From Tubulanus polymorphus (Eukaryota > Animalia > Nemertea): 64,000 nt of DNA. Below, one piece after another: positions 2,924 through 29,503 of this stretch. The stretch spans positions 4,960,001 to 5,024,000 of the forward strand of contig NC_134035.1 in NCBI RefSeq assembly GCF_964204645.1. Direction: 5' to 3'. How positions within the stretch are numbered: the stretch's first letter is position 1; each line of letters opens with the position of its first letter. Position numbers and translations under genes: made by a program. The notes beneath the pieces were generated by a model. That model was not told where the DNA came from, searched no databases, and saw only the letters and a list, made by a program, of their open reading frames with translations.

Positions 2924-3223
2924 ATAAATATACATTCAGATGCTGCAGTAAACCTTGCCTAACTCGGACAAAACATTGTTTTTTTTCGAACCTTTACTCG
3001 AACTTCACTGAGAACCTTAGTGTCAGTGGTGTATCGCTGTCGCGACCTATGACATGGTTCATGCGAGCTCTTAATAAATATACATTCAGATGCTGCAGTA
3101 AACCTTGCCTAACTCGGACAAAACATTGTTTTTTTTCGAACCTTTACTCGAACTTAACTGAGAACCTTAGTGTCAATGGTGTATCGCTGTCGCGACCTAT
3201 GACGTGGTTCATGCGAGCTCTTA
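2924..3223. repeat. 150-bp direct tandem duplication (2 copies) just 3' of ARL6
   Basis: 2924-3073 and 3074-3223 are near-identical (ataaatatacattcagatgctgcagtaaacc...atgcgagctctta). Confidence 0.95.
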
Positions 3224-5229: not shown

Positions 5230-7983
5230 CTAGTTTTCCAGCGTCATAGCGCGAAATGCTTCCATGTATTTGTTTTTAGCGTGACATGTGTATTGGGAAT
5301 CCCAGCCGGTCAGGTCAGCTGCTGTCGGCGACCAGATCACCAAACGAGCCATTACCGATACGGGTTGACGAGATGTAACCACCCTCATGTTGCCCGTTGA
5401 TGTCAACTCGGTGGATTCTTTTTCGAAGTCGCTCAAATCGTGCATCCTTTGCGTCTTGTAGAAACGAACTTCTGGAAGCGGATATCCGGTGGTATCGCAG
5501 TTCAAGATAACCTTAAACAAAACAAAATATACGATTGAACAAAATAGGACAGGACCCAGTGCATCGCAGATTTCGAAGTTCGGTCCATGTACTAACTAAT
5601 TGAAATTCATTTACAAATTTTTTAACGATAGAGTCAATTTTTAACACCGAATGAGTCCAGAATTTATAGTAATTCGGTTGGACCAAAACTTAACAGCAGT
5701 AACAAACGTAACGGACGACCAGGAACAATTTTGAAATTACCTCTTTCTTGCTAGTTGCATTGGACACTGTTTCATGCATTTCGTTGTTTGAAATGAATCT
5801 AATCGGTTCAAACTGCGCGAATTTGATCGCTTTCGTTTGAATGGGATGTCGATAACCGACATCCAACTTCCACTGATCCTCGAAAATCGCTGACTGGCTT
5901 CCATCCACTTTGAAATAGGATATGAGAAAGTTTTCCGCGCGAATCATCGAAACTGGTTTTACGAATTGACCATTTTTGCTCGTCATTAGAATATAAGGAC
6001 TCGGATAAGCCACAGAGAATACAGTGACCATGGTCTTCTCTTTATGGCTGATAGGTACTACACCAAACTTCTCCAAAGCGTCCGTGTTGGCGTACCATAA
6101 ATTCTGGTACAACGGAAGTGTATATACCAATACATTTCTGATCTTTCCGAAATCGCCTCTCTTGGTGATGAAAGAACACATGGAAGTGTGAATCTCAACT
6201 ACTTTGTCGACGCCTAAGTTCAAGTATGGAACTGATGCGCAGTATTCACCAGTATTTTCATCTGTTGCGTTCAGTTTAACGACTATCTTCGCCTCGTAGG
6301 TCATATCGTCGATCCATTTGTTATATGTTCCGTGATTGTCGATCGAGTTCGGACTGTAATGGTCCGTTTTTTTACCGTCGTTTGCGACGAATCTGTACCA
6401 GTCGTATGCAGCCCTCAAGACGCCTCTGCTTGCTTTACTGCGTGAGAATTGCGGGGCCGCATCAGTGACATCGAACGTCAAGCGTCGCTGTAACGTCACC
6501 GTACCATTGACTGTATCTTCCAGCAGTATTGTCTCCGGAGACCCGGTAGCTTTACCCAACGGGACATCGCGCACGATTACCATTTTACCGGCATTTACCA
6601 TGACATGTATGGTGTATGTTTGGCAGCCAGTCAGTATTATCATCAGTCGGTACATTCCTAGTTTTTCTAGTTTTTCTGGGGCTGATTCGACTTCTAAACG
6701 TGCTGTTGTTGACGAGCCCGAAGTTTGTTGAGATATTTTACCGTATCCATCATCATCTCCAGCATCTGGAAATATAAATTCAGAGACCTTCGCATCATAC
6801 TGAGACTCACACTTCCTGATCTGCTGAAAATCGAAAGTATAAGAAACGAAAGAACTAAGTTTCTTTTTTTCCTTTTATACTACTGAAATCTCATCAGTTT
6901 TATTAATTATCAGTGATTTACAGGACGCCGGACGATGTTTTTTATGATTGCGACTTATGTAGATAAGTATTTCTAGTATATACGTATACGTATATGGACT
7001 AATTTACCCGTATTGGTGATCAGCACTTCTCGTTCGGGAAACCGAATATACCAGTGGGTTTCTAATTCCAGGCTCGTATCAGCGGTGACTGATATGACGA
7101 ACGGTTTTCGTGGTTTGTACTCGGAAACTTCAACTCGCCGAATCCAACCGAGATTATCCGAGCACTCATTATCCTGATCGTCTGCCCAAACAATACTAAA
7201 CGACGCGATACATACCTAAAACAATTCATACAAACAAAACATGGTCAGATCTGGTTAATGGATTAGTATCTCTGTTTATGGATTTCCATGATTTTGTTTG
7301 TAATTTCTGAAGACTCGTAGATTCAGATTCGCAGACGACCCTTTATTGTATTCAAAATCCTTACGTACTGAGACATACAGAATATGGAAAGTATTTGAGA
7401 TCGATAGGTATAATAATAAACCAATAAAAAGAAAAACTAAATAAGTAGTTATATACACTTGAGATAGATATGTGAATGATTATATCAAAGCATTCAGTGA
7501 TGAATTTTCCAATGGCTTTTTGTAGATTACAATCGGTTATAAGATAACTATCAGGATATAGTCGAAACGTTAAAACAAACTCCAGCTCAGAGAAACATTT
7601 GAGACTCGCTTTTCTTTTATATTGTGCAATTATTTTGTGTATCATCGGTATTAATCGGAGAGTTTCATCAATATTAAAACGTGAAACTGCTAGGCCTTCA
7701 CCGTGAATTTAGTCGAAACGTTAAAATAAACTACAGTTCAAACAAACATTTGAGACTCGTTTTTCTTTTATATTGTGCAATTATGTTATGTATATATACA
7801 CGGATTCAGAGTGCTCCATCGAAACTGCTATAGGCCTACACCATGAATTTTCCTCTGATACATTTTAAAATATCTACAAAAATCGGTCATTCATTTATTC
7901 ATTTCTAAATCGAAAAAAGACTGAGACATCTTACTCACCGTGAAAATTACTGCGAAAAAGGACCAACTTAGCTTCCTCTCCAT
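5230..7983 (-). CDS. Secreted multi-Ig-like-domain protein, copy A (intact, 519 aa)
   Basis: Exons 7939-7983, 7008-7215, 5741-6765 and 5230-5511; all introns GT-AG, phases 0/1/0, 1560 nt total. Signal peptide MERKLSWSFFAVIFTVCIASFSIVWA. The last exon is I-set-like (LNCDTTGYPLPEVRFYK...ARLVI...QYTCHAKN). No TM segment before the stop. Confidence 0.8.
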
Positions 7984-8569
7984 AGTGCCTACACTGCGTG
8001 TGAACGGCCAGACTTGTATAAACAAGCCCTCTATTCACAAATGATGGAATATTTGGTCTTTTCACATAGATTACAAGTGGGTAATTGGTACGTTTAACAT
8101 ATTACCCGGTAACGTTTATCGTGATTACGAGTTGTTTTCCAAAGTAGGTCCTAAATATGTTTGTTAGAAATAATTCACATTCGAATCAACGTGTCCTCCT
8201 CCCCAATCACAAATATCATCAGACGCTTTACATTTACAAAATGGTGGCAAATCTTACCTGCAGAGAAAACGAAAAGTCACGATGGAAATATGATTTTTTG
8301 TTTCAAATTGCACACTGTTTTCTCAATGATAATTTTATGCTGAATGAATGACATAAACAAAATTATATAGGATTGAACGAATTCGAGGACCTGCATGTCT
8401 CCACTCACCGTAGGAGTTTATCATAGATCTTTCGTCGATGCAGTATTTTAAATTGTACACGATGCCAGTTCAAATGAGTATCGCCGAAAGTAAAATTGAC
8501 GATACCGTTTCTCACATTGGTCGACGTGGATTCGGGGAAAAGAAAGCACACACACTCATTTCGATTCTG

Positions 8570-8892
8570 AAGTACTCGGAAACTTCAACTCGCCGAATCC
8601 AACCGAGATTATCCGAGCACTCATTATCCTGATCGTCTGCCCAAACAACACCAGACGAGGCGATACATACCTGTAACATTTCATACAAACAAAACATGGT
8701 CAAAAAAGTGGTTTCTTGATTAGTATCTTTGTTCATGGATTTCCATGATTTTGTTTTTAACCTTACTGAAGATGACTATTTAGATAAAGTCGAAACGAGG
8801 AAATAATCATGAGTACGAAGAGAAATTTGGGACTCTTGCCCTGCGAGATGACGCCATAAGTATCTTACCCCGAAATATATATCTATGATAGA
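8570..8892 (-). pseudogene. Deleted fragment of a D-type Ig gene (5' half of exon 2 plus part of intron 1)
   Basis: It encodes VCIASSGVVWADDQDNECSDNLGWIRRVEVSEY fused directly to the 3' flank that normally follows the stop codon (cactcatttcgattctg). The intron sequence matches copy D (~19430-19651). Confidence 0.85.
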
Positions 8893-10613
8893 TTGGCTAA
8901 AATAAAACAGGGTTTCTGATTGGCTAATAATGACATCATTCTAAGCTGTGCACTCGGTCTAGTCTTCGTGCTTGCTCGTAGGTCTAGTGTAGCAGGGTTT
9001 CGTACCGTGGCAATCTCGATGCCATCAGGTTCTCTGCCTGCCGGCGAGAATGTCATAGTTAGATGTTTTGGACCAGTTCCTTATACGCTTTCGATGTTGA
9101 ATATGTTCCTTATAAGTAGCATTTTCACTTACCGCAAATCGAACAAAAATCCCTGTTCAAGAAAGATCCGACTTACTCTGGTTTTACTGTATGTCATCTC
9201 TAAGTCTAACAACGAATACTTATTCAAACTGGGCTCACTGTTTCTTGATATAACGATTCAATCATTATTATTTTATGATTTAATTACGATATTTTAATCG
9301 TTGCTGCATACGTGTATGTTTTTCCCTAGTCTATTTATTATAAGACCGATGATATAACTGTTTAAAAGATCAAAAACCCACGACGGTTCCAAGTAAAATC
9401 TGACATGATGTTGCCTTTAAATGTTGTCTTCGTTGTAGCGGGTAGCGGGTATGTTTGGGAGCGTTCAAATAGCACGTACAAACTTCGGGGAAAAGGAATA
9501 AAAGAATACCTTACTATCTTTGTTACAGGGGAGGGGTGTTAGAAAAATAAACATACTTTTCTGATCATACTTTTCTGGGTCTTAGAAAAATGTAAGTACT
9601 TAGTGGACGAGAGATGTCCAAAATTATCTCACACACCCTCAGATACAAATTATTGAATTAGTATATCCTAAATCATCCCACTACTTCTAAGATCTACATA
9701 TGATTTTATATAATAGACATATCTTCGCCATTAAATTCTGGCGCCTATCTCAGCGTTTTTCGATTACAGGTAGGTCAACAATTTAAGCGTTATATCATGG
9801 CCAAAACGTTGGTCTTTTGAGTAAGTACTGAGATCGTGAAAGGGGGAGGGCGTCTAAAACATGGCGAATTCGACCGTTAAAGTACTATTCGAACGCTCCT
9901 TTTGACAAATGAACAGTTTTTGGCTAGCCGCCGATTAGTGCCTAAGGGTCATTTATAGAATACAGGTGAAAGATTGGCCACTTCCTGCCGATGTTCAATG
10001 CGACGATGCAAAAATCGGCGAAATTGTTCTCAATAACTATAGTGATAATCATCTGAGATTTGTTGAGAGATTTTCCACCGTTTTTAAAAACCGTCCATCA
10101 ATCATCCAACTGCGCGGGCCCGATTGTATTAGTCATTTATAAACTGTATCTGATTATAGTTTAACGGAATTTCGCTGTGCTGATATTCGTTATATGTTGT
10201 CCACTCACTGAATTGTGACAATAAAGTGTTTACATTCACTACTCAATTTTGTTTGTTGATTGTATTTCTTTCTTCATGTTTCGTACGCGTCGTAATGGAA
10301 AGATCAATTTTCAATGGTACTTTTGATTTTCTGATAGAAAAAGAAACTCCCAAAAAATTTCCCCCATAAGATTTTTGATAGATAGGAATTGACTTTCTGG
10401 CGGAAGATATATTTCTCGCATCGTCCTGAATTTGTGGTGGCTAGGGGACTTGAAAAAATGCGAACACTTTGGCAATTATCCGGCAGATAATTCGAAAAAT
10501 TATAATCACGAATTCGCCCAAAAAATCATAGAATTCGAAAATAAAGTGACACGTATTATGCTAGTGGTATCTATTATCATATCTATTTTCTCTTCCCCGT
10601 CCAGGTATCTTAT

Positions 10614-13264
10614 CTAGTTTTCCAGCGTCATAGCGCGAAATGCTTCCATGTATTTGTTTTTAGCGTGACATGTGTATTGGGAATCCCAGCCGGTCAGGTC
10701 AGCTGCTGTCGGCGACCTGATCACCAAACGAGCCATTACCGATACGGGTTGACGAGATGTGACCACCCTCATGTTGCCCGTCGATGTCAACTCGGTGGAT
10801 TCTTTTTCGAAGTCGCTCAAATCGTGCATCCTTTGTGTCTTGTAGAAACGAACTTCTGGAAGCGGATATCCGGTGGCATCGCAGTTCAAGATAACCTTAA
10901 ACAAAACAAAATATACGATTGAACAAAATAGGACAGGACCCAGTGCATCGCAGATTTCGACGTTCGGTCCATGTACTAACCTAAGAATTGAAATTCATTT
11001 ACAATTTTTTAACGATAAAGTCAATCTTTAACACCGAATGAGTCCAGAATTTATAGAATTTCGGTTGGACCAAAACTTAACAGCAGTAACAGACGTAACG
11101 GACGACCATTAACAATTTTGAAATTACCTCTTTCTTGCTAGTTGCATTGTACACTGACTTATGCATTTCGTTGTTTGAAATGAATCTAATCGGTTCGAAC
11201 TTCACGAATTTGATCGCTTTCGTTTGAATGGGATGTCGATAACCGACATCCAACTTCCACTGATCCTCGAAAATCGCTGACTGGCTTCCATCCACTTTGA
11301 AATAGGATATGAGATAATTTTCCGCGCGAATAATCGAAACTGGTTTTACGAATTGACCATTTTTGCTCGTCATTAGAATATAAGGACTCGGATAAGCCAG
11401 AGAGAATACAGTGAATATGGTCTTCTCTTTATGGCTTATTGGTACCACACCAAACTTCTCCAAAGCGTCAGTTTTATCCTGCCATAAATTCTGGTACAAC
11501 GGAGCTGTATATACCATTACATTTCTGATCTTTCCGAAATCGCTTCTCTTGGTGATGAAAGAACACATGGAAGTGTGAATCTCAACTACTTTGTCGACGC
11601 CTAAATCCAAGTATGGAGCTGATGCGCAGTATTCGCCGGTATTTTCATCTGTTGCGTTCAGTTTAACGACCATCTTCGCCTCGTAGGTCAGATCGTCGAT
11701 CCATTTGTTATATGTTCCGTGATTGTTGATCGAGTTCGGACTGTAATGGTCCGTTGTCCGACCATCGTTTGCGACGAATCTGTACCAGTCGTATGTAGCC
11801 CTCAAGACGCCTCTGCTTGCTTTGCTGCGTGAGAATTGCGGGGCAGCTTCAGTGACATCGAACGTCAAGCGTCGGTGTAACGTCACCGTACCATCGACTG
11901 TATCTTCAAGCAGTATTGTCTCCGGAGACCCGGTAGCTCTACCCAACGGGACATCGCGCATGATTACCATTTTACCGGCATTTACCATAACATGTATGGT
12001 GTATGTTTGGCAGCCGGTCAGTGATATCATCAGTCGGTACATTCCTAGTTTTTCTAGTTTTTCTGGGGCTGATTCCACTTCTAGACGCGCTGTTGTTGAC
12101 GAGCCCGAAGTTTGTTGAGATATTTTACCGTATCCATCATCATCGCCAGCATCTGAAAATATGAATTCAGAGACCTTCGCAAAATACTCAGGACACTTCG
12201 ATCTGCTGAAAATCGAAAGTATGAGCAACGAATCTTATCAGCAATCTTCCTTTTATGCTACAAATATTTCATTATTCATATTGATTATCAGTGATGCACT
12301 GGACGCCGGATGATGTTACTTATAATTGCGACTTTCGTAGATTATAGTATTTCTGGTATAGGCCGATATGTAAAATAGAGATGGAATAATATACCCGTAT
12401 TGATGATTGGCACTTCTCGTTCAAAAGACCGAATATACCAGTGGGTTTCTAATTCCAGGCTCGTATCAGCGGTGACTGATATGACGAACGGTTTTCGTGG
12501 TTCGTACTCGGAAACTTCAACTCGCCGAATCCAACCGAGATTATCCGAGCACTCATTATCCTGATCGTCTGCCCAAACAACACCAGACGACGCGATACAT
12601 ACCTGTAACATTTCATACAAGCGAAACTTGGTCAAAAATCTGGTTACTTAATATCTTTGTTCATGGATTTCCATGATTTTGTTTGTAACCTTAATATTTC
12701 TGAAGATTCATAGATCAAGATTCACAGACGACTTTTTACTGTATTCAAAATCCCTACGTACAGAGACATACAGAACATATAAAAAAATATATGAGATCGA
12801 CAAGTATGGTGATAAGCAAATATAAGAAGTACTAAACAAGTATATTCATATACAGTTAAGATAGATACAAGACATGTGTATATGAATGATTACGTATATC
12901 AAATCATTCAGTGATGAATTTTCCAACGGCTTTGAGTAGATTACAATCGATTAGAAGATAACTATCAGGATATAGTCGAAACGTTAAAATAAACTACAGC
13001 TCAAACAAACATTTGTTCAAACAAACTCGTTTTTCTTTTATATTGAGCAATTATGTTATGTATTTACACGGATTCGGAGTGCTTCATCGAGATTAAAACG
13101 CGAAACTGCTATAGGCCTACACCACGAATTTTCCTCCGATACATTTTAAAATATCTACAAAAATCGGTCATTCATTTATTCATTTCTAAATCGAACAAAG
13201 ACTGAGACATCTTACTCACCGTGAAAATTACTGCGAAAAAGGACCAACTTAGCTTCCCTTCCAT
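10614..13264 (-). CDS. Secreted multi-Ig-like-domain protein, copy B (intact, 519 aa)
   Basis: Exons 13220-13264, 12395-12602, 11128-12152 and 10614-10895 have the same lengths (45/208/1025/282) and phases as copy A, and are open throughout. Confidence 0.8.
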
Positions 13265-13882
13265 AGTGCCTACACTGCGTGTGAACTGCCAGACTTGTAT
13301 AAACAAGCCCTCTATTCACAAATGATGGAATATTTGGTCTTTCCACATAGATTACAAGTGGGTAATTGCTACGTTTAACATATTACCCGGTAACGTTTAT
13401 CATGATTACGAGTTATTTTCATAAGTAGGTCCTAAATATGTTGTTAGATATAATTCACATTCGAATCAACGTGTCCTCCTCCGCAATCACAAATATCATC
13501 AAACGCTTTACATTTACAAAATGGTGGCAAATCTTACCTGGAGAGAAACGAAAAGTTACGATGGAAATATGATTTTTTTTTAAATTGCACACCGTTTTCT
13601 CAATGATGATTTTATTCTAAATAAATGACATAAACAAAATTGTATAACATTGCACGAATTCGAGGACCTGCGTGTCTCCACTCACCGTAGGAGTTTATCA
13701 TAGATCTTTCGTCGATGCATTATTTTAAATTGTACACGATGCCAGTTCAAATGAGTATCGCCGAAAGTAGAATTGACGACACCGTTTCTCACATTGGTCG
13801 ACGTGGATTCGGGGAAAAGAAAGCACAAACACTCATTTAGATTCTGTATAACTCAAATAATTGCGCCGTCCGTACATCTTAT

Positions 13883-16523
13883 CTAGTTTCCCAGCAGCGT
13901 CACATCGCGAAATTCTTCCATGTATCTGTTTTTAACGCGACAGGTATACTGCGTATCCCAGCCGGTCAGGTCAGCTGCTGTCGGCGACCTGATCACCAAA
14001 CGAGCCATTACCGATACGGGTTGACGAGATGTGACCACCCTCATGTTGCCCGTCGATGTCAACTCGGTGGAATCTTTTTCGAAGTCGCTCAAATCGTGCA
14101 TCCTTTGCGTCTTGTAGAAACGAACTTCTGGAAGCGGATATCCGGTGGTATCGCAGTTCAAGATAACCTTAAACAAAACAAAATATATGATTGAACAAAA
14201 TAGGACGGAACCCAGTGCAGCGCAGATTTCGAAGTTCGGTCCATGTACTAACCTAAGAATTGAAAATCATTTTCAATTTTTTGACGATAGAGTCAATTTT
14301 TAACACCGAATGAGTCCAGAATTTATAGTATTTCGGTTGGAGCAAAACTTAACAGCAGTAACATATGTAACGGACGACCAGGAACAATTTTGAAATTACC
14401 TCTTTCTTGCTAGTTGCGTTGTACACGGACTAATAAACATTTGGTTGTTTGAAATGAATCTAATCGGTTCGAACTGCGCGAATTTGATCGCTTTCGTTTG
14501 AATGGGATGTCGATAACCGACATCCAACTTCCACTGATCCTCGAAAATCGCTGACTGGCTTCCACCCACTTTGAAATATGATATGAGAAAGTTTTCCGCG
14601 TGAATAATCGAAACTGGTTTTACGAATTGACCATTTTTGCTCGTCATTAGAATATAAGGACTCGGATAAGCCACGGAGAATACAGTGACTATGGTCTTCT
14701 CTTTATGGCTGATAGGTACTACACCAAACTTCTCCAAAGCGTCCGTTTTGGCGTACCATAAATTCTGGTACAACGGAGCTGTATGTACCATTACATTTCT
14801 GATCTTTCCGAAATCGCTTCTCTTGGCGATGAAAGAACACATGGAAGTGTGAATCTCAACTACTTTGTCGACGCCTAAATCCAAGTATGGAGCTGATGCG
14901 CAGTATTCGCCGGTATTTCCATCTGTTGCGTTCAGTTTAACGACCATCTTCGCCTCGTAGGTCAGATCGTCGATCCATTTGTTATACGTTCCGTGATTGT
15001 CGATCAAGTTCGGACTGTAATGGTCCGGTTTTTTTACCGTCGTTATCGAATGATTTGTACCAGTCTTCAGACGTGGCACTCACGATGCCTTCACTGGCCT
15101 TACTGCGTGAGAATTGCGGGGCCGCTTCAGTGACATCGAACGTCAAGCGTCGCTGTAACGTCACCGTACCATCGACTGTATCTTCCAGCACTATTGTCTC
15201 CGGAGACCCGGTAGCTCTACCCAACGGGATATCGCGCACGATTGCCATTTTACCGGCATCTACCATGACATGTATGGTGTATGTTTGGCAGCCAGTCAGT
15301 ATTAGCATCAGTCGGTACGTTGCTATTTTTTCTAGTGTTTCTGGGGCTGATTCGACTTCTAAACGCGCTGTTGTTGACGAGCCCGAAGTTTGTTGAGATA
15401 TTTTACCGTATCCATCATCATCTCCAGCATCTGGAAATGTAAATTCAGAGACCTTCGCATCATACTGAGACTCACACCTCCTGATCTGCTGAAAATCGAA
15501 AGTATAAGAAACGAAATAACTAAGTTTCTTTTTTCCTTTTATACTACAGAAATTTCATCAGTTTTATTAATTATCAGTGGTTTACAGGACGCCGGACGAT
15601 GTTATTTATGATTGCGACTTATTTAGATAAGTATTTCTGGTATATACGTATACGTATATGGACTAATTTACCCGTATTGGTGATCAGCACTTCTCGTTCG
15701 GAAAACCGAATATACCAGTGGGTTTCTAATTCCAGGCTCGTATCAGCGGTGACTGATATGACGAACGGTTTTCGTGGTTCGTACTCGGAAACTTCAACTC
15801 GCCGAATCCAACCGAGATTATCCGAGCACTCATTATCCTGATCGTCTGCCCAAACAATACTAAACGACGCGATACATACCTGTAACAATTCATACAAACA
15901 AAACATGGCCAGATATCTGGTTAATGGATAAGTATCTCTGTTAATGGATTTCCATGATTTTGTTTGTAATCTTAACATTTCTGAAGATTCATAGATTCAG
16001 ATTCGCAGACGACCCTTCATTGTATTCAAAATCCTTGCGTACTGAGACATACAGAATATGAAAAGTATTTGAGATCAACAGGTATAATAATAAACAAATA
16101 AAAATAAAAACTAAACAAGTAGTTATATACATTTGAGATAGATATGTGAATGATTTATCAAAGCATTCAGTGATGAATTTTCCAATGTCTTTTTGTAGAT
16201 TACAATCGGTTATAAGATAACTATCAGGATATAGTCGAAACGTTAAAACAAAAAATAAACTACAGCTCAAACAAACATTTGAGACTCGTTATTCTTTTAT
16301 ATTGTGCAATTATGTTATGTAATTACACGGATTCAGAGTGCTTCATCGAGATTAAAACGTGAAACTGCTATAGGCCTACACCATGAATTTTCCTCTGATA
16401 CATTTCAGAATATCTACAAAAATCGGTCATTCATTTATTCATTTCTAAATCGAACAAAGACTGAGACATCTTACTCACCGTGAAAATTACTGCGAAAAAG
16501 GACCAACTTAGCTTTCCCTCCAT
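13883..16523 (-). pseudogene. Multi-Ig gene copy C, frameshifted
   Basis: Exons 16479-16523, 15672-15879, 14400-15430 and 13883-14167. A +1 nt change at ~15027 gives a stop at 14982-14984. A second, +2 nt shift lies at ~14430-14440. Confidence 0.8.
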
Positions 16524-17143
16524 AGTGCTTACACTGCGTGTGAACTGCCAAACTTGTATAAACAAGCCCTTTATTCACAAATGATGGAATATTCGGTCTT
16601 TCCACATAGATTACAAGTGGGTAATTGCTACGTTAAACATATTACCCGGTAATGTTTATCGTGATTACGAGTTGTTTTCCAAAGTAGGTCCTAAATATGT
16701 TTGTTAGAAATAATTCACATTCGAATCAACGTGCCCTCCTCCGCAATCACAAATATCATCAAACGATTTACATTTACAAAATGGTGGCAAATCTTACCTG
16801 GAGAGAAACGAAAAGTTACGATGGAAATATGATTTTTGTTTCAAATTGTACACTGTTTTCTCAATGATGATTTTATTCTAAATGAATGACATAAACAAAA
16901 TTGTATAACATTGCACGAATTCGAGGACCTGCGTGTCTCCACTCACCGTAGGAGTTTATCATAGATCTTTCGTCGATGCATTATTTTAAATTGTACACGA
17001 TGCCAGTTCAAATGAGTATCGCCGAAAGTAAAATTGACGATACCGTTTCTCACATTGGTCGACGTGGATTCGGGGAAAAGAAAGCACAAACACTCATTTC
17101 GATTCTGCATTACTCAAATAATTGCCCCGTCCGTACTTCTTAT

Positions 17144-20100
17144 CTAGTTTCCCAGCAGCGTCATAGCGCGAAATGCTTCCATGTATTTGTTTTTAGCGCG
17201 ACAGGTATACGAATACCAGCCGGTCAGGTCAGCTGCCGTCGGCGACCTGATCACCAAACGAGCCATAACCCGCTCTGGTTGACGAGATGTGACCAACTCA
17301 ACGTTACCCTTCGATGTTAACTCGGTGGATTTTTGTTCGAAGTCGCTCAAACCATTCATTATATGTGTTTTGTAGAAACGGATTTCTGGTAGCGGATACC
17401 CGGTGGCATCGCAGTTCAACGTTACCTAAAACAACAATATACATAAGATCAAAACAAGTGAGGACCCAGTGCTGCGTTTAGCGGAATAGTTCCACGATCG
17501 AATATTTACAAAAAGTACCCGATTATTGTAAGAGCTTACCACCAACGATTTAGGTAACTAACTAGAACAAAGCATGATAGGACCTATAGTGTTATACCAC
17601 AGTGTTGTCGAATAAGATCTAACTCAAATAGAGTTGAAATTCATATTCGATTCATTTACCATAAATGGTGCAATTCGAACATCGAAAGGGTCTAGATAGT
17701 TACCTAATCGATGGGCTTGTATAAATATCCGATCCGTGAAACTAAACCACAGGTACAAATACATAACGACCGGGAACAGGATGAGTCGAGAAGATACACA
17801 CTATCCGTGTGAGATGGATGACGAGAGAAACCCAACAATGATTCAGTCAAAGATAAATAATTCTTGAATTGAAGTGTGAAAAATTCTTGAATTGATGGCT
17901 AATAGTTTTTATAGCCGGAACGTTGCTCAAAATAGATCTCTTCAATTCAAGAATTTTTCATCTTTGACTGAATCATTGTGGGATTTCTCTCGTCAACGAT
18001 TACGAACAATTTTAGAATATATTACCTCTGTCTTGCTAGTCGCATTGAGCACTGTTTTATGCCATTCGTTGTTTGAAATGAATCTAATCGGTTCGAACTG
18101 CGCGAATTTGATCGCCTTCGTTTGAATGGGATGTCGATAACCGACATCCAACTTCCACTGATCCTCGAAAATCGCTGACTGGCTTCCATCCACTTTGAAA
18201 TAGGATATGAGACGGTTTTCCGCGCGAATCATCGAAACTGGTTTTACGAATTGACCATTTTTGCTCGTCATTAGAATATAAGGACTCGGATAAGCCACGG
18301 AGAACACAGTGACAATGGTCTTCTCTTTACTGCTTATTGGTACCACCCCGACATCTTCCGTTTTATCCCGCAATAAATTCTGATACAACGGAGCTGCATA
18401 TAACAGTACGTTTATGATCTTTCCAAAATCGCTTCTCTTGGTGATGAGTGAACACATGGAAGTGTGAATCTCAACTACTTTGTCGACGCCTAAATCCGAG
18501 TAAGCAGTTGATACGCAGTATTCGCCGGTGTTTTCATCTGTTATCTGTTCAGCGTTCATTTTAACGAATGTGCTCGTCTCGTAGGTCAGATCGTCGATCC
18601 ATTTATTATACGTTCCGTGATTGATGATCGGGTTCGTGCTGTGATCGTTCGTTTTTTTACCGTCGTGATCGAATGATTTGTACCAGTCTTCCGATGTGGC
18701 CCTCAAGACGCCTCTGCTTGCTTTGCTGCGTGAGAATTGCGGGGCCGCTTCAGTGACATCGAACGTCAAGCGTCGCAGTAACGTCACCGTACCATCGGCT
18801 GTATCTTCCAGCACTATTGTCTCCGGAGATGCGGTAGCTCTACCCAACGGGATATCGCGCATCATTACCATTTTACCGGCCTTTATCATAAGATAAATGT
18901 AGTATGTTCGGCAGCCGGTCAGTATTATCGTTAGGCGGTATGTTCCTAGTTTTTTTCGTGTTTCTGGGGCTGATTCGACTTCTAAACGTGCTTTTGTTGA
19001 CGAGCCAGAAGTTTGTTGAGATATTTTACCGTATCCATCATCATCACCAGTATCTGAAAACGTGAATTCAGAGATCTTCGCATCATACTGAGAATCAGGC
19101 TTTCTGGTATGAGATGGTTCAACACCGAACATTCAAAGATTGAGCAACAAAAGAACAAAATTTCTTCCTTCCTTTAATATACCTAGTAGGTATACGAAAA
19201 ATACAGATGGAATAATTTACCCGTATTGATGACTGGCACTCCTCGTTCAGGTAAAGTAACGAACCAGTGGGTTTCTAATTCCAGGCTCGTATCAGCGGTG
19301 ACTGATATGACGAACGGTTTTAGTGGTTCGTACTCGGAAACTTCAACTCGCCGAATCCAACCGAGATTATCCGAGCACTCGTTATCCTGATCGTCTGCCC
19401 AAACAACACCAGACGACGCGATACATACCTGTAACATTTCATACAAACAAAACATGGTCAAAAAAGTGGTTTCTTGATTAGTATCTTTGTTCATGGATTT
19501 CCATGATTTTGTTTGTAACCTTACTGAAGATGACTATTTAGATAAAGTCGAAACGTGGAAACAATCATGAGTACAAAGAGAAATTTGGGACTCTTGCCCT
19601 GCGAGATGACGCCATTAGTATCTTACCCCGAAATTTATATCTATGATAGATTTATGAGTCCCTGTCGCAGTTTTCTATTTGAACAATTTTGATGATTGTA
19701 GTTTATCTGGACACCTCGTAATCTATGATAAATTCTAGGTTATTTTCAGAACAATAAAAAACACCGCGAGCAATACACGATAAATGATAATCTATAAACC
19801 GATACATTAATTTTCAGGCAACATAGAAATTATATGAAATCAAAAAACTATCGATCTGGACACCTCGTAATCTATGATAAATTCTAGGTTATTTTCAGAA
19901 CAATAAAAAACACCGCGAGCAATACACGATAAATGATAATCTATAAGCCGATACATTAATTTTCAGGCAACATAGAAATTATATGAAATCAAAAAACTAT
20001 CGATCAGCTTGATTACGAATCATTGACGGGGTTTGATACATATATACCACAGAGATTTAGTCAGTTCCAAAATTTGGAACGCGACCTGATTCGCTCTTTT

Positions 20101-20380
20101 GGGTCGTTCCAAATTAAACCGGTCTGAAATGGACCAGACCAATTTGGAACCGACGCTTTTCAGGTGTAAGCGCTTGGTCCGATCCAAATTGGGCCGGGCC
20201 GAATTTAGACTGGTCTAAGTATAAGCTTAAAACATGGAACAGGCCTATGTTCACAACAAATGTGTCGATGATACATTTCAGAATATCAACAAAAGCGTCG
20301 TCATTCACATTTCTAAATCGAACAAAGATATATTTACTCACCATGAACGTAAGAAATGTCAAACTTAGCTTCCCCTCCAT
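17144..20380 (-). CDS. Secreted multi-Ig-like-domain protein, copy D (intact, 518 aa, most divergent intact copy)
   Basis: Exons 20342-20380 (MEGKLSLTFLTFM|gtgagt), 19221-19428, 18026-19053 and 17144-17425; phases are consistent and the frame is open. Confidence 0.78.
19705..20005. repeat. 149-bp direct tandem duplication in intron 1 of Ig copy D
   Basis: atctggacacctcgtaatctatgataaattctagg... starts at both 19705 and 19854. Confidence 0.95.
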
Positions 20381-21033
20381 GGTGACTACACTACGTGTGA
20401 AACTGCCAGACAGAAACGTGTATAAACAAGCCAAAATCATAAATAATGAAATGTTTTGTCTTTCCGCGTATAGGTAATTGCAACATTTAACATATCACTC
20501 CGTAATGTTTATCGTAATTAGAGGTTATTTTCCAAAGTATAGCCGTAAATATGTTATCGTTATCAGTCAAAATTCACATTCGATTTTACGTATCCTCCGC
20601 AATCACGTATACGTATCTGATATTTTACATTTACAAAAAATCGTGAGAAAAAAATGTGAGAAAACGCAAACTCATGACGGAAATAAGATTTTTTTTTCTT
20701 AAATTTTACATAGTCTTCTTAACGTTAGTTTAATTCCGAAGGAATGACAGAACCAAAATAGTATACGATTGAACGAATATATCATCTAAGGGCCTGAATG
20801 TTTCCAGTTACCGTAAGAGTTTATTATAGACCGCTTTTCGATGCATTATTTCAAGTTTTACATGACACCATTTCCAAAGAGTATATACTCTTTGGAAATA
20901 GCGTCAAAAATCGAAAGTAAATTTTACGTTAACTGTTATGTATAGTTTCGCTGAGAAATGCGTAGAAAAGAAAACACACATATTTATTCCAATTCTGGAT
21001 TACTAAAAAAATTTTCCGTCCGTACATCCTGAT

Positions 21034-23263
21034 CTAGTTTTCCAGCGTCATAAAGCCAAATTTTTCCATGTATTCGTTTTTAGCGCGACAGGTGTACTGT
21101 GAATACCAGCCGCCTACGTCAGCTGCTGTCGGTGACCTGATCACCAAACGAGCCATAACCCGCGTCGGTTGACGAGATATGACCACCTTCTTGTTACCCG
21201 TCGATTTGATCTCGGTGGATTTCTTTTCGAAGTTTTGCAAACCATTCATTCTTAGTGTTTTGTAGAAACGGATTTCTGGTAGCGGATATCCGGTGGCATC
21301 GCAGTTCAACGTTACCTATAACAACAATAAACATAAGATTAAAACAAGTCAGGACCCAGTGCTGTGTTTAATAGTTCCACGATCGAATATTTTCAAAAAC
21401 CATCCGATTATTTTAAACCTACCACACCAACGATTTAGGTAACTAACTAGAACCAAACATGATAGGATCCATAATGTTATACGACAGTAGTTGAATAAGA
21501 AAATAAAAACAGTAATTTTCAATGTTTTTACCAAAAAAGGTGCAATTCACCAATAAGAAGGAGTCCAGAATTAGTATTTCGCAGGTACCAACAAATACAC
21601 TCGATCAAGAACTATTTTAGAATATGTTACCTGTTTCTTGCTAGTCGCATCGAACACAAATCTCGTCATTTTTTTGTTTGAAATGAATGTAATCGGTTCG
21701 AACTTCGCGAATTTGATCGCTTTCGTTTGAATCGAATTTCGATAACCGACGTCCAACTCTCACTGATCCTCGAAAATCGCCGACTGGCTTCCATCCACTT
21801 CAAAATAGGATTCGAGAAAGCTATTCGTGCGAATCGTCGAAACTGGTTTTACGAATTGACCATTTTTGCTCGTCATCAGAATATAAGGACTCGGATAAGC
21901 GACGGTGAATACAGTGACAATGGTCTTCTCTTTATGGCTGATAGGTACTACACCAAACTTCTCCAGAGCGTCAATTTTGATGTGCCATATATCCTGGTCT
22001 AACGGAGGCGCATATACCATTACATTTTTGATCTTTCCGAAATCGCTTCTCTTGGTCATGAGTGAACACATTGAAGTGTAAATCTCAACTACTTTGTCGA
22101 CGCCTAAATCCAAGTATGGAGCTGATGCGCAGTATTCGCCGGTATTTTCATCTGTTGCGTTCAGTTTAACGACCATCTTCGCCTCATAGGTCAGATCGTT
22201 GATCCATTTGTTATACGTTCCGTGATTGTCGATCAAGTTCGGACTGTAATGGTCCGTTTCTTTACCGTCGTTATCGAATGATTTGTACCAGTCTTCAGAC
22301 GTGGCACTCACGATGCCTTCACTGGCCTTACTGCGTGAGAATTGCGGGGCCGCTTCAGTGACATCGAACGTCAAGCGTCGCTGTAACGTCACCGTACCAT
22401 CGACTGTATCTTCAAGCAGTATTGTCTCCGGAGACCCGGTAGCTCTACCCAACGGGACATCGCGCATGATTACCATTTTACCGGCATTTACCATAACATG
22501 TATGGTGTATGTTTGGCAGCCGGTCAGTATTATCATCAGTCGGTACATTGCTATTTTTTCTAGTGTTTCTGGGGCTGATTCGACTTCTAGACGCGCTGTT
22601 GTTGATGAGCCCGAAGTTTGTTGAGATATTTTACCGTATCCATCATCATCGCCAGCATCTGAAAATATAAATTCAGAGACATTCGCAAAATACTGGGACT
22701 CAGGCTTTCGGGGATGATGCGGTTCGACACCGAAGGATTGAGCAACAAAAGAACGAACTTTCTTCCTTTTTTCAATATATCTAAAGGTACACGAAAAAAA
22801 GGCGATCGAGCAATTTACCCGTATTGGTGATCAGCACTTCTCGTTCGGGTAACCGAATATACCAGTGGGTTTCTAATTCCAGGCTCCAGCGGTGACTGAT
22901 ATGACGAACGGTTTTCGTGGTTCGTACTCGGAAACTTCAACTCGCCGAATCCAACCGAGATTATCCGAGCACTCATTATCCTGATCGTCTGCCCAAACAA
23001 CACCAGACGACGCGATACATACCTGTAACATTTCATACAAACAAAACATGGTCAAAATGATTGATTGAATATGTGATTGATGCATTTCAAAATATTGACA
23101 AAACATTTATCTATAAATGTATTTAGAATTGGGACGTCACGAATACAGCCAGCATGATTCCCCGCGATAATTCTGTTTTCACATTGAAATAGAGTCAATG
23201 GTTAAGCGTAGAACTTTTTCTGACTGTAAAAATTGTTGCGAAAGTCAAAATTAGCTTCCCCAT
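21034..23263 (-). pseudogene. Multi-Ig gene copy E, disrupted
   Basis: Exons 23225-23263, 22819-23022 (4-bp deletion; 204 vs 208 nt), 21631-22658 (Trp codon changed to TGA at 21760-21762) and 21034-21315. Confidence 0.8.
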
Positions 23264-23529
23264 AGTGATGCATATGAACTGCAGTAAGCGCTGTATTCGT
23301 TATTATGATTTATTCGTATAATCGTGTAAATTGCGAGTGGATATTGCGACGTTCGATTTACTGTGGCATGTTAAACGTGCTTATTTTCCAACATCAACAT
23401 AAAAAGACGTTCTAATTTCCGAACAAATCATATGACTGACGCGTCAGTCTCCTCCGTAATCGCAAACGTCTGTAGTATCACGGTTGAAAAATTCCAATAC
23501 TTGACAAAATGGTTTGATGTAGGTGACAG

Positions 23530-23655
23530 ATCCTGCCCAAACGATACGATACATGCCTGTTACAATTCATAGAAGAATGATCAAACATGATCAAAGTGAA
23601 TGATAGAAATTTGTTAATGACGCATTTCGAAATATGGACAAAACATCCATCTATG
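23530..23655 (-). pseudogene. Degenerate remnant of a further Ig-gene exon 2/intron 1 boundary
   Basis: cctgcccaaacgatacgatacatgcctgttacaattcata...aaacatgatcaaa...gacaaaacatccatctat resembles ~22990-23115. Confidence 0.5.
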
Positions 23656-24352: not shown

Positions 24353-27300
24353 ATGACTCCCGAATACATCAGTGAACAGCGAGTACGCGCGGCTTTGAAT
24401 CCTGTCCATACGTTAGTCGATGCGCTGGAAGAAGCGTTCAGGAACTTTTCTAAGGGTAAAGAAGGGGGCGCAATTCAACCCTTACGTACGAGGCTTGAAG
24501 TCAGTGATCACAACGGGCAAGTTATATTTCTATTTCATGGCGTTGACAGCGCATTTCCGATTAATTTTTGGGTAAATGAAATTGATAGTCAGAGTCGTGG
24601 CACTTCTGGCGTGGTGGGAAAATGTTACATTTCAATAAATGGACCAAAATTGTTTTGACAGAATGCTGATCGCTATGCCTGTCTATTCGGTAAACGACCA
24701 AGCACTCGCCATAAAGGTACTTACGCTATACAGCGAAAATAAGAGGAGGAATCTTCCGACTTATCAAGGCGTCATGTTGTTGTTCCACGCCGATACTGGC
24801 TGTTTGGCATCGGTAAGGCTGTCAGATCACATGCGGTACTAAGTCAAAATAGTCCGATCAAATCGTTCGCAATGTCTTATGAGATTTCTTTTCAAAATAG
24901 ATAATCGATGCTATTTCGGTGACAGAAATAAGAACCGCAGCCGCGTCTGCCGTCGCCACTAAGGTACAGGTCTAGCTACAGAATGATTTTCTTCCCCTTA
25001 ATCTATTGACATTGTAACGTCCCTTTTATCTATGATATATAGTGCATCTACCGCGGTGAACCGAAAATATTGGCCATTATCGGAGCCGGCTCACAAGGAA
25101 AAGGTCACTGGAATGTGTTCTCGCAAATTTACTCGTTCACTGAAGTATGTCTTCGAAAAACCGAATAAAACTTTCGAAGAAAATATTTTCTAGAATGAAT
25201 AACTAATTCTAACGTATAGGTTCGAGTTTACAGCCGAACGCGTAGTTCATCGGAGAAACTGGTGTCTCATATCGGAAGTAGAGGAAAGGTTTGTGAAAGC
25301 GCGGAAGATGCCGTGAAGAACGCTGATATTATCATCACAGCAACATTCTCGAAACAGCCGCTAGTTTTTAAAGACTGGGTCAAACCAGGAGCTCATATCA
25401 ATGGTTTGTTTTTCAATCTTTTTTAATTTTCTATATTCTCCTTCCCCTGGGAGACTTTATTCTATGAACGCCGAGCGAAGCTGGATATAAGAGGGGTTTC
25501 GCAACCTCAAATCCATAACCCCCAAATTTCAAACTACAAACTCACTTATATTTTTCTTGTAAATTCAGGGAAATTGAAATGAAAACAAATGACAAAAAAT
25601 ATTCTATGCAAAATTTACTATTTTCAACTCGATCTGTTAGTGAGTTAGAGATCTGAGAAAATCAAATAATTACCTTGATAATAAAAGGTTTTTATAATCA
25701 ACGGTTGTTTCAACCAATGTATTGCAGCATTGGGAGCCAACTCGCCGGACCGGCAGGAACTGGATCCAGTATTAGTGAGAGATTCCGTCGTGTACGTCGA
25801 CGACAGACGAGCCGCCATCGCGGGAAGTGGAGATATAATCCACTCCAAGGTAGAAATAGAAAAAACAAAATTCGGTGTTTCATCATAGAAATTCGATTTT
25901 TATTTTTTGAAGAATTCACAGTGATGCATCAGAAGTAGTATATCCCAAGAGAGTTAATGTATTGGCAAATCTGATTGGCTGTTATTTGGCGTACTAACCA
26001 ATGCGAAAAATTGACACATTCATAATAAGAATAACATTCTGATATCAATTTCATTATCGTTATGGCTGGCTTATGTCGACAAGCAACGCGACGCCTACCG
26101 ACTCCTACCGACGCAACTGAGAGCAACCGCGATCGCAGCCCAGCTTATGTCGACTGCGCTCCGATTCGCAGCAACTGAGGTCGACTAGCGGGATATGAGA
26201 TCCTCCCAGTTGCTTCCCTACTTATGTCGGTTGCGATTACTAGCAACTGCAACGGCTCAAATGGTCACGTCATAAGCACTTTGAGAATAAATTTGAATTA
26301 TTAGGAAATATATTTCTATTAAAAAAGCTATTTCTTTAAGACTTTGATCTTTCTGATTCTGTTTTGACTACAACGTGCTAGCGACATCTATAAAGATGGC
26401 CGCTCACACCATAATTCTACCAATTTCGTTTCTAGATCTTTGGTCCAGTCCTCTGCCGTGCTGAAGGTTTTGTTTACGTTTTGAACTACTTGAATTTGAA
26501 AGTTTATGACTAATTACGAATGACGCTAACTAGCGGTGATAATTTGTACTATGTATATGCGGTCTCTCATTGGCTGGAACCCCAGCGCTCAGTTCCGTCG
26601 CGTCGCAGATGAGCTTATGTCGGCTGCGATCGAAAGCAACTGCCCGCCTACCGTAGGCCGGAGTAGAACATGGGCAACTAGCCGGATATGGCTTGCGACG
26701 AGTCGGTAGGCGTCGCGTTGCCGTAGCAAGCCGGCTTATGTCGAACCGATTGAGGAGCAACTGGCGGCCGCTAGTTGCCGCTAATCGGCGGTAAACCCAG
26801 TTGCGTCGGTAGGCGTCGCGTTGCTTGTCGACATAAGCCAGCCTTGGAGCAATCATGACAAATGATTACTCCAAGATAAAACCTCATATTACAGTCAACC
26901 CCCTATACACTACCCACATCGGTGCAGCAGAACGATTTTGGCGGTATAGAGAGTATGGCGGTATATCGGGGGCGACACGGTATATCGGGGGTTGTCTGTA
27001 TTACAGTCAACTCCTCATATACCGGCTACATAGGTTACTCAGGATTTTAGCGTCTGGTATAGGGGTTACTTTCACTACATTTATTACATTTATTTATTTT
27101 CACCGGTTGAAAGACAAAATACACATGTTCCATTCTTGGAAAATAACCTGGCGTTAAGCGCTAATGCTGATTTATCGGGGGGGGGGGGTATATAAGGGGT
27201 ATATACTTGTTAATTTGTTGTCCATTAAACTGTAGGCAGAAATCTACGCAGAAATTGGAGAAGTGATCGATGGTAGAAAGGAAATAAAACGTGATCCGAT

Positions 27301-27709
27301 CACTATATTCAAGTCATTGGGTAAGAAAGAGATAAAACAATAACTTAACTCACAATTAATTCTTTTTCACAGTTTGATAAAATTGATCTCAAGTAAATCA
27401 GCGGCGAAAATGAGCCGAAAAATAGATTTACAAACATTAACAATTGAAATCAAATACGGTTTTACAACGAACTTCGGGAGACCAGTAAAATATATTCCTT
27501 ATAAACACGAGTTCGTTATGTAAAGTATGAAATTATCGATATCTGTTTCTGTTCGGGGCGAAATTATAGAGAGTTGTTGTTGATTTTCCTATTTTAAAGG
27601 TTTAGCGATTGAAGACGCGGTTACTGCCAAACTTGTGCACGATTCTGTGCACAAAGAAAGAGCAGCCGACACTGACAGAAAGTCGAACCAACAAACTGGA
27701 CGAAAATAA
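24353..27709 (+). CDS. CRYM: Mu-crystallin / ketimine reductase (ornithine cyclodeaminase family), 8 exons, 326 aa
   Basis: Exons 24353-24516, 24662-24812, 24901-24963, 25043-25144, 25220-25403, 25728-25849, 27236-27320 and 27600-27709 (981 nt, in phase). Motifs: QPLRT, AMPVYS, RTAAASAVATK, IIGAGSQG, ADIIITAT, WVKPGAHINALGA, AEIYAEIGEVI, IFKSLGLAIEDAVTAKLV. Confidence 0.92.
26064..26843. mobile_element. 780-bp non-autonomous DNA transposon (PIF/Harbinger-like) in CRYM intron 6
   Basis: Perfect 39-bp TIRs ggctggcttatgtcgacaagcaacgcgacgcctaccgac, with recurring internal cttatgtcg motifs. The element is absent at the paralogous position in the CRYM pseudogene (~32597). Confidence 0.85.
26890..27000. 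mobile_element. Short Tc1/mariner-type MITE (TA-flanked)
   Basis: ta|cagtcaacccc...ggggttgtctg|ta. Related ends occur at 27002, 32648-32946 and ~37228. Confidence 0.6.
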
Positions 27710-28589
27710 ACATTTACCGATACTACATTCAACGTCCAATTAATCGTTGATCGTAAAAATAGACGTTTTTCGAATTTAACTGACATTAATTTCACGTTCA
27801 ATTGTAATATGGACGTATCTTAACTGACATTAATTTCATATCCAATTAGCAATTGTAAAACTGAATATATATATATGTTTCAAAATTTCTGATATTCATT
27901 TAATCAATTTCTGAGTCCAAGATCGTACGACGCGTATTAGTAACACATTACACGTAGCGAAAACCGACGGTTGGAAAAACTCTTACATTTCTGTAAGTAT
28001 TTTCTCTGCAAAATAAATTCAGCAACGATTTGTTCGACCAACAAATCACTGCTTAATTTATCACAAATTCATGTAAGCACAACCAAGAATTTTCAAATAC
28101 TAATAACGGTTAAAAAAATTCTATAAAAGATCCACTATATGAAGATTTGGCAACTTTATCTTCATATATTTATTCAGGTTCTTCCAGTCTCGATCGATTG
28201 TTACTATTAATAGATTTATACGTGATGAACATCATTTAGATAACGATAAGCTTGTAACTGTTTCTGTTAATTTTTCCATTAGTTTGTATCACTACTGATT
28301 ACTTGATTATTCTCTTAGTTCTGGATTTGTATATTTCACAATTTTTTTGTAACTCAATATTCCTGAAGATGAAACGTCGAATAAACTTCTAGCTCAATTA
28401 AAAACATTTATCGTACTTTATGTTATTTTTCGTTGTTGCTGAGCAGTTGTCATGATGGATTTCTCAATTTCTCAAACATTTCGAAATTTGTGCTTCAACT
28501 TTAGGATGAGTAAAAATAGTGTGAACTATCATCTTCAAAACATTATTGAATTATAGAATATTCACTAGTATCTGCCTAGTTTGAAAATG

Positions 28590-28930
28590 AAATCTCGGTA
28601 ATAAGACAGATAACAAAAAGCGCTATTCCGAAAGCTCGCTCTCCGAAGGCCCTTTTAGATAGCTCGGTTTCAAAGTTTTTAAATCTATCGATGCCATCAA
28701 CTGTCCTTAACAGTATATTCCATAAATGAGCTTCACACGACTTAAAGTCACGATCACCAAACGACGTGCGTGTTCTGGGCAACGCAAGCGTATTTGTAAT
28801 AACAGATCTTGTTGCCACTACTATTAGATGTCGTAATGAAGATTAGGTCCTGTAAATATACAGGAGCTATGCCATGGACTCGAAGATCTGGACTGATATC
28901 TTAAAGTCAACTCTTACCACAATCGGGTAT
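28590..28930 (-). mobile_element. Degenerate 3' fragment of a CR1/L2-type LINE ORF2
   Basis: The minus-strand translation LPRTRTSFGDRDFKSCEAHLWNIL, with upstream WL.PIV.RVDFKI and AP.YLQDL remnants, resembles the C-terminus of CR1/L2 reverse transcriptases. Confidence 0.7.
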
Positions 28931-29503
28931 AGCCAATACAATCTACCCAGAATCTGAATAAAATAACGAAATTAATTTGCAACGAACACGTATATTCCAT
29001 ATAGTGTATGAGTCAGGAGAATATCAAAATATCGATTATATGTACATTTCAAGCGATCGAATTTCTGTCAAACTGTCATCACCGTCATGACAGGTGTAGA
29101 AACATGTCAACGGAATAAATGCCGATGATTTCTGCGTTTCAGAATGAACCGAGTTTAGGCCCTAACATCGCTGAGCAAAGGTAAGCGCAATTATTTTTTC
29201 ATTTTCCAGTGAATACGCCACAGTCTTCAGCGAATCTTCAGAGCAATCTTTCGAATCGAGAGAACCAACGCGCACTGAAAAGATTACACTCAAAGACCAC
29301 AACATTTTGGCTACACTGACTTGAATAAATCGACCTAGAATGAATTTTCATCTACCGCAGTTTCTGTCAGAAACTTGTGCAAAATCTCGTTTATCATCAG
29401 AAATCACAGTTTTCAAATCTTAGTTCATTTGTAGTAAAACGGGACGTAATTGATTACGTTTAATTCCACCGAATTTCAATCTATTTGAATATAGGCTAAT
29501 AAG

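Follow-up and report, generated by a model that had tools for sequence, protein, structure and literature searches.

The minus strand of positions 5230-23263 of the window, as we call the whole 64,000-nucleotide (nt) stretch under analysis (C11:4960001-5024000 of the 268-Mb genome of the nemertean Tubulanus polymorphus, GC ~39%, free of Ns), harbors five head-to-tail copies, A to E, of a four-exon gene. This five-copy array is real, with three intact and two broken copies. It is most probably a birth-and-death tandem array of a secreted family of the immunoglobulin superfamily (IgSF) with four immunoglobulin (Ig) domains, found so far only in T. polymorphus. The intact copies A, B, and D would each encode four Ig-like domains, preceded by a signal peptide and without a membrane anchor, and hence a soluble extracellular glycoprotein whose Ig domains might serve to bind other molecules. 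The array would evolve by tandem duplication and by the exchange of exon segments between copies, through gene conversion or unequal crossing-over, with copies being lost by frameshift, stop, and deletion, and at least one transposon-associated transfer may have carried two genes to another chromosome. Our best guess as to the role of the products, made with low confidence, is that they are fast-evolving, environment-facing secreted binding factors that serve in humoral defence or as components of a secretion.

Gene copies, exchange and selection

Self-BLAST with one unit and tBLASTn with the 519-amino-acid (aa) product delineated five units between ~5017 and 23057 on the minus strand, with DNA identities of 82-92%. 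When the four exons of copy B were projected onto each other unit, AG/GT boundaries were found around four exons in all five copies, and the exon-3 acceptor, of phase 1, reads tt(t/c)cag followed by AT. The lengths of exons 1 to 4 are 45+208+1025+282 nt in copies A and B and 39+208+1028+282 nt in copy D, and all three copies are open. Intron 3 measures 229-232 nt in copies A-C, 600 nt in D, and 315 nt in E. A word search with the exon-3 translation revealed that the four-exon model of copy B is identical to a 519-aa RefSeq protein of T. polymorphus, and the RefSeq products of copies A, D, and C, obtained by cluster look-ups, match the exon models exactly. Searches were run with single exons or database proteins, the spliced protein not having been joined by hand. 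The products of A, B, C, and D all bear the name "uncharacterized protein" in RefSeq; the array genes are already annotated there but undescribed.

The two broken copies have been damaged in different ways. Copy C harbors a frameshift in exon 3 near position 15030 and is further disrupted near 14430. In copy E, exon 2 has lost 4 nt near 22885, exon 3 is interrupted by an in-frame TGA (21760-21762), and the donor of exon 1 is poor. What is left of a sixth copy comprises the 3' portion of intron 1 and, from exon 2, the initial ~111 nt, which run straight into intergenic DNA of the array; this remnant is 97.5% identical to a D-type copy on chromosome C3. A search of the T. polymorphus genome indicated that the array lies wholly inside the window, with no more members elsewhere on C11. 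A first-pass annotation of this DNA had described five copies in head-to-tail order on the minus strand, with A, B, and D intact and C and E broken, which self-BLAST, tBLASTn, and exon projection bear out. The four-exon plan and the phase-1 acceptor of exon 3 that it had proposed for all of them agree with the splice boundaries and with the identity to the RefSeq proteins. It had also listed two fragments, one of which is clear (8572-8894); the second was not identified and may be the degenerate exon 1 of copy E. The hallmarks of birth-and-death evolution to which it had drawn attention are present, in the form of pseudogenes plus a truncated copy.

Exchange between copies is apparent from the patchwork of exon 3. 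In copy C, nt 1-480 of this exon show 0-3 mismatches per 120 nt to the type found in E and on C3, after which the sequence is nearest to that of B (2 mismatches) and then to that of A (3-6). Similarly, A and D are nearly identical in exon 3 over nt 721-900 and display 18-30 differences per 120 nt elsewhere. The introns of copies A, B, and C are not sensibly alignable with those of D and E (forced p-distance 0.32-0.50, with differing lengths), and the synonymous divergence (dS) of the exons between the two groups is ~0.2. A mosaic exon 3, together with unalignable introns beside low exon dS, fits copies that are mosaics generated by exon-focused gene conversion or unequal crossing-over, and suggests that exons alone take part in the exchange.

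The mode of selection was investigated by comparing nonsynonymous with synonymous changes (dN/dS) over exons 2-4 by the Nei-Gojobori method. In nine comparisons of intact copies dN/dS was 0.45-0.69, in each case significantly below 1 (Fisher p 0.027 to 3.5e-7). By domain, values range over 0.3-0.9, and the few that surpass 1 derive from very small numbers of synonymous changes. Among 31 overlapping sliding windows of 30 codons, a single one (residues 132-161) exceeded 1, with a value of 1.22 from pairs that are non-independent. Long invariant blocks occur among the copies, and the first domain, D1, is one of the better conserved parts of the protein (pN/pS, the ratio of the corresponding proportions of changes, is 0.46-0.51 over residues 27-71). 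Selection on the array proteins is thus weak and purifying, not diversifying. Positive selection, both gene-wide and windowed, was rejected on these values. The epithet "diversifying" that had been given to the family at first sight does not stand, as dN/dS is significantly below 1, the predicted loops and strands change at equal relative rates, and there is no robust hypervariable patch.

Domain plan and predicted fold

The only strongly hydrophobic stretch of the protein is N-terminal, the Kyte-Doolittle mean over 19 residues reaching 1.98 at residue 8 but not exceeding 1.04 in the remainder. Residues 2-24 are modeled as a helix by AlphaFold2, and the signal peptide is likely cut after residue 26. 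In the family members examined, hydropathy analysis detected no transmembrane segment or glycosylphosphatidylinositol (GPI) tail beyond this signal-like N-terminus, and the C-terminus is hydrophilic. The earlier prediction of a secreted-type protein without such segments is borne out by this profile, which is itself predictive.

All structures discussed here are predictions from shallow paralog alignments. The AlphaFold2 model, built on an alignment of 12 paralogs, is all-β, with a mean predicted local distance difference test score (pLDDT) of 73.6 and a predicted template modeling score (pTM) of 0.70. As modeled, the signal peptide is followed by four Ig-like domains, each predicted to adopt an Ig-like β-sandwich: D1 (~31-146) is V-like, D2 (~150-286) is atypical and carries a long, poorly modeled loop, D3 (~288-403) is I-set-like and without cysteines, and D4 (~404-519) is a canonical I-set domain. 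With Foldseek, the model matched multi-Ig chains over ~500 columns with E-values of 1e-15 to 1e-10, led by titin I65-I70 (E 1e-15) and followed by Sidekick, axonin-1, Robo1, Dscam, and contactins. VIA-align identified D4 (residues 404-519) as a canonical I-set domain (Z 12.4-12.7, root-mean-square deviation [rmsd] 2.3 Å, 102 aa), aligned residues 288-519 with two-Ig tandems, and aligned residues 150-519 with three-Ig chains such as DIP and Dscam Ig7-9 (Z 12-13). D1 was tested alone by folding the naturally truncated product of copy C, and the top 50 matches to its residues 33-145 in an all-against-all search were all Ig domains (Z 8.3-9.2, rmsd 2.0-2.7 Å, 91-99 aa). It leans toward the V-set, with a Foldseek E-value of ~2e-3 and a score of 0.94 on ESM features. 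A search of the ESM Atlas by shape returned generic multi-Ig clusters only (TM-score 0.21-0.36).

In P0001, the product of copy B, Pfam recognizes only the last ~100 residues (Ig_3, E 1.7e-5, and I-set), and Ig_3 or I-set matches were obtained in five of 12 family members, with a best E-value of 5e-9. A profile of the family searched against PDB sequences matched Ig domains of DCC and Robo1 (E 2e-9 to 1e-7) over a stretch spanning D3 into D4. Pfam assigned no family to the translations of exon 2 and exon 3 taken alone, and a phmmer search of PDB sequences with exon 3 returned a tail fibre only (E 0.97), which was dismissed as a chance match. An internal repeat test detected no sequence similarity among the four domains (z -1.4 to 0.9 relative to shuffles). 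Thus, the "Ig-like repeats" of the first-pass annotation hold at the level of the fold, where AlphaFold, Foldseek, and VIA-align gave four predicted Ig-like domains throughout the protein, but not at the level of sequence, where the domains have no mutual similarity. No lectin, fibrinogen, chitin-binding, or transmembrane part was found by Pfam in P0001 and the 12 members or by hydropathy, as had been proposed.

Of the six cysteines of the mature protein, two each are located in D1, D2, and D4 and none in D3, and only the D4 pair is canonically placed. The pairs are predicted to be Cys431 and Cys502 in D4, the latter within a Y-T-C motif, Cys260 and Cys281 in D2, where the G-E-Y-C motif (Cys260) is kept, and Cys33 and Cys132 in D1. 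The introns do not obey the rule of one domain per exon: intron 2 interrupts D1 at an acidic loop, and intron 3 interrupts D4 beyond its first strand.

The family in the genome and its surroundings

A profile search of the genome yielded ~23 family loci on 10 chromosomes, ~10 of which form a close subfamily, the remaining ~13 being distant (Table 1). The window array is therefore not the whole family, most loci of which are only ~20-27% identical. Introns at profile columns 78 and 414 are common to all members, and distant members have two more, near columns 214 and 314. Since distant members carry these extra introns, the window subfamily seems to have lost them and so to have merged three exons into the large exon 3.

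The restriction of the family to one species rests on an exhaustive phmmer (HMMER) search of 1.84 billion representative proteins, which gave 14 matches. Eight of them are T. polymorphus proteins of ~250-520 aa, comprising one close paralog and seven proteins at 22-27% identity, and the others are giant multi-Ig proteins matched by D4 only. No ortholog outside T. polymorphus was found in that search, in agreement with the initial view of a lineage-specific family without a named ortholog. When the exon-3 translation, the distant paralog P0018, and the family alignment served as queries in word-indexed searches, nothing outside T. polymorphus was returned except for one generic hemicentin-like Ig match; the search with the family alignment missed the family's own distant members, and its blank carries little weight. 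No paper on a four-Ig family of T. polymorphus was found in the literature.

The two close relatives at 24.26 Mb on chromosome C3 lie in a transposon-flanked piece of array DNA. C3:24263583-24270807 is 7.2 kb of array DNA in two joined pieces. The first corresponds to window positions 17523 down to 14375, that is, exon 4 of D and then the 5' part of C, with 97.4% identity, and the second, 98.7% identical, runs from position 22702 down through the 3' part of E and then exons 1-3 of D to 17523. The join is inside exon 3, and the segment is circularly permuted, both of its ends being at the same array position. On either side of it, within C3:24261826-24272556, is a 1756-bp element with ~580-bp terminal inverted repeats, the two copies being in direct orientation and 98.6% identical; at least 40 young full-length copies of this element are present genome-wide at 94-99% identity. 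Two genes are annotated there (L036 and L037): P0023 (520 aa) is an intact chimera, and P0002 (444 aa) is without the Ig exon. Such an arrangement would be expected if a composite transposon had left an array in which each period contained the element once. Alternatively, a circle made up of one period and one element may have undergone recombination with an element already in place. The C3 copy provides a tidy natural example of the seeding of a tandem-array gene elsewhere.

Table 1. Coordinates of the array copies and of related loci (positions in the window unless a chromosome is named)
Feature	Position	Strand	Remarks
Copy A	5230..7983	minus	intact, 519 aa; RefSeq LOC141912735 (P0021)
Copy A exons	exon 4 5230-5511, exon 3 5741-6765, exon 2 7008-7215, exon 1 7939-7983	minus	
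Copy B	10614..13264	minus	intact, 519 aa; RefSeq LOC141912813 (P0001)
Copy B exons	exon 4 10614-10895, exon 3 11128-12152, exon 2 12395-12602, exon 1 13220-13264	minus	
Copy C	13883..16523	minus	broken; annotated as 233-aa truncated LOC141912930 (P0003)
Copy C exons	exon 4 13883-14167, exon 3 14400-15430, exon 2 15672-15879, exon 1 16479-16523	minus	
Copy D	17144..20380	minus	intact, 518 aa; RefSeq LOC141912745 (P0022)
Copy D exons	exon 4 17144-17425, exon 3 18026-19053, exon 2 19221-19428, exon 1 20342-20380	minus	
Copy E	21034..23263	minus	pseudogene; from exon projection
Copy E exons	exon 4 21034-21315, exon 3 21631-22658, exon 2 22819-23022, degenerate exon 1 23225-23263	minus	
Sixth-copy remnant	8572-8894	minus	overlaps open reading frame 8512-8736
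Start and end point of C3 copy	17523	minus	intron 3 of copy D
Close-subfamily loci	five window copies; C3 24.26 Mb (two), 23.63 Mb, 22.22 Mb; C10 3.80 Mb		
Distant loci	on C2, C4, C5, C7, C8, C9, C10, C12		several in tandem pairs; ~20-27% identity
Distant tandem-pair examples	C9:13862350-13869247, C7:15876133-15881347, C2:2935362-2938444		

Several other features were recorded in the window. Just past the 3' end of the array, on the plus strand (2305-2898), is an intronless open reading frame (ORF) of 197 aa with a full-length match to Arf-family GTPases (Pfam Arf, E 2.4e-51). On the plus strand at 24353-31397, short ORFs resemble the exons of an ornithine cyclodeaminase/mu-crystallin gene, with a weak Pfam match at 31092-31397 (OCD_Mu_crystall, E 0.0035) and an N-terminal ORF at 24353 that is similar by eye. 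A single minus-strand ORF of 3920 aa (42783-54545), rich in Ser, Thr, and Pro, contains ~105 copies of a 31-aa (93-nt) repeat, owing to which the GC skew is close to 0.48 across 10 kb. It has the appearance of a giant secreted protein of mucin type and shares its strand with the Ig array. Tandem repeats were found at 60584-61898 (61-nt unit, ~21 copies, 92-96% matches) and at 39341-39940 (154-nt unit, 3.9 copies), and separate two-copy arrays of ~150 nt occupy 2924-3223 and 19705-20005, one of them in intron 1 of copy D.

Possible roles and known systems

A number of points weigh against our account of the array as a secreted four-Ig family. Secretion and glycosylation are predicted, as is any ligand that the soluble protein would bind by its Ig surfaces, and the occurrence of the family in a single species may reflect the small number of public nemertean proteomes. 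A dN/dS near 0.5 also fits plain relaxed constraint without a special role. As for the fold, the Z of ~9 obtained for D1 is little above the background of 7-8 stated for the aligner, about 45 residues of D2 have a pLDDT under 50, and D4 of the window proteins reaches 25.7 bits on Ig_3, under the gathering score of 30.

Other explanations of the array are conceivable. It might represent a diversifying repertoire for humoral or self/non-self recognition, subject to positive selection and patchwork conversion as in FREP, VCBP, and Alr. A tandem array with pseudogenes and mosaic copies, a predicted secreted product, a lineage-restricted and expanded family, and a dN/dS of 0.45-0.69, high for a metazoan gene, would all suit such a repertoire. 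However, every pair has a dN/dS significantly below 1, the loops are without excess change, and one window only is above 1, while just three copies are intact in the array, with some six or seven across the whole close subfamily, long blocks are invariant, and lectin-type or other effector domains are absent, all of which makes this explanation unlikely. It could hold only if diversity came about by the shuffling of segments instead of through selection on point changes. That the proteins form a nemertean-specific soluble humoral recognition repertoire, with variety provided by exon-segment shuffling and by transposon seeding of arrays on other chromosomes, is decidedly unlikely, and an immune or recognition role for them is only conjecture. 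It is very unlikely that they are secreted Ig cues for cell-cell recognition in the nervous system or in tissue patterning, in the manner of Drosophila Beat/Dpr/DIP or C. elegans ZIG. DIP-alpha and DIP-theta, Dpr-DIP complexes, and Dscam are the best three-domain structural matches, ZIG-8 and Dpr1 Ig1 are among the matches to D1, and the family profile matches Ig domains of DCC and Robo. These structural matches nevertheless correspond to the generic I-set fold, at 10-20% identity, and wiring families are under strong constraint, with conservation from one phylum to another, whereas the array family is without relatives outside one species, weakly constrained, and rich in pseudogenes. An environment-facing role is tentatively favored over neuronal wiring because of the tandem arrays, the pseudogenes, the dN/dS near 0.5, and the lack of orthologs.

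There is a slim chance that the products are structural or functional components of nemertean secretions, such as the epidermal mucus or those of the proboscis gland, rather than recognition molecules. A predicted secreted, cysteine-poor, and fast-evolving product would be compatible with this function, and the mucin-like ORF lies ~20 kb away on the same strand. This ORF is a weak hint, and the only contextual one, of such a role; adjacency alone is weak evidence, and the main text of a paper on the mucus and proboscis proteome of another palaeonemertean mentions neither Ig proteins nor mucins. That the copies are artefacts of assembly or haplotype is barely credible. The C3 piece and window DNA share 97.4-98.7% identity, and the piece is bounded by a high-copy 1.76-kb repeat able to mislead an assembler, but runs of N are absent from both the window and the C3 extract, and the question touches the C3 duplicate at most. 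For the window copies an artefact was rejected, because they differ by 6-20% in protein, in intron lengths, and in their disruptions.

A birth-and-death array of a secreted four-Ig family, as it stands, is an ordinary lineage-specific IgSF expansion, namely a new family in a well-known superfamily, evolving in a well-known way. What is new is a clear domain plan and an evolutionary description for ~23 loci labeled "uncharacterized protein", in a phylum in which almost no immune or cell-recognition molecules have been described.

Among known systems, the clustered IgSF genes for snail FREPs, amphioxus and Ciona VCBPs, and Hydractinia Alr likewise undergo birth-and-death evolution with exchange between copies. 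FREPs are defined by a C-terminal fibrinogen domain, which Pfam found in none of the 12 members, the protein ending right after D4. VCBPs combine two V-type Ig domains with a chitin-binding domain, whereas the array proteins have four domains and no chitin-binding one. Alr proteins possess a transmembrane segment with a cytoplasmic tail and a hypervariable membrane-distal domain; the members examined are devoid of a transmembrane segment, and D1 ranks with the better conserved regions. Positive selection was also not detected in the array genes, a further point of difference. The first-pass annotation had concluded that the array matches none of them, with which the absence of their defining partner domains, as judged from Pfam and hydropathy, is in accord. 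Were the array genes found to be inducible by challenge, or to show polymorphism among individuals, they would be a lophotrochozoan addition to the independently expanded IgSF recognition systems.

The DIP, Dpr, and Beat proteins of Drosophila and the ZIG proteins of C. elegans are small extracellular Ig families, with two to three Ig domains, that have likewise expanded within lineages, and they provide the best multi-domain structural matches (Z 12-13). Most of them are anchored by GPI or a transmembrane segment and are strongly conserved. In contrast, the array proteins are predicted to be soluble, have four domains, are weakly constrained, and show no sequence kinship to them beyond the generic Ig fold. 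The poxvirus type-I interferon-binding protein (3oq3) and the interleukin-1 receptor (IL-1R) ectodomain are soluble three-Ig ligand binders that were matched with Z of 11.5-11.7, over up to residues 54-519, yet 9-13% identity and an overall rmsd of 15-17 Å denote a shared fold only. We know of no cytokine system that would link the array proteins with binders of this type.

The nearest analogue in overall plan is hemolin, a lepidopteran haemolymph protein (PDB 1bih) that is likewise a soluble four-Ig protein without an anchor. Hemolin derives from L1/neuroglian and consists of four canonical, disulfide-bonded I-set domains in a horseshoe fold, encoded by a single-copy gene. In the array proteins, in contrast, only D4 is canonical, and the genes are in arrays. 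The profile match to hemolin is weak (E 0.0089), the exhaustive HMMER search returned no L1/neuroglian-type matches, and TM-scores to the horseshoe structures of axonin-1, contactins, and Sidekick are 0.19-0.25 in Foldseek. According to the predicted models, the closest plan is thus that of hemolin, and the closest structures are generic I-set chains such as those of DIP, Dpr, Dscam, and titin.

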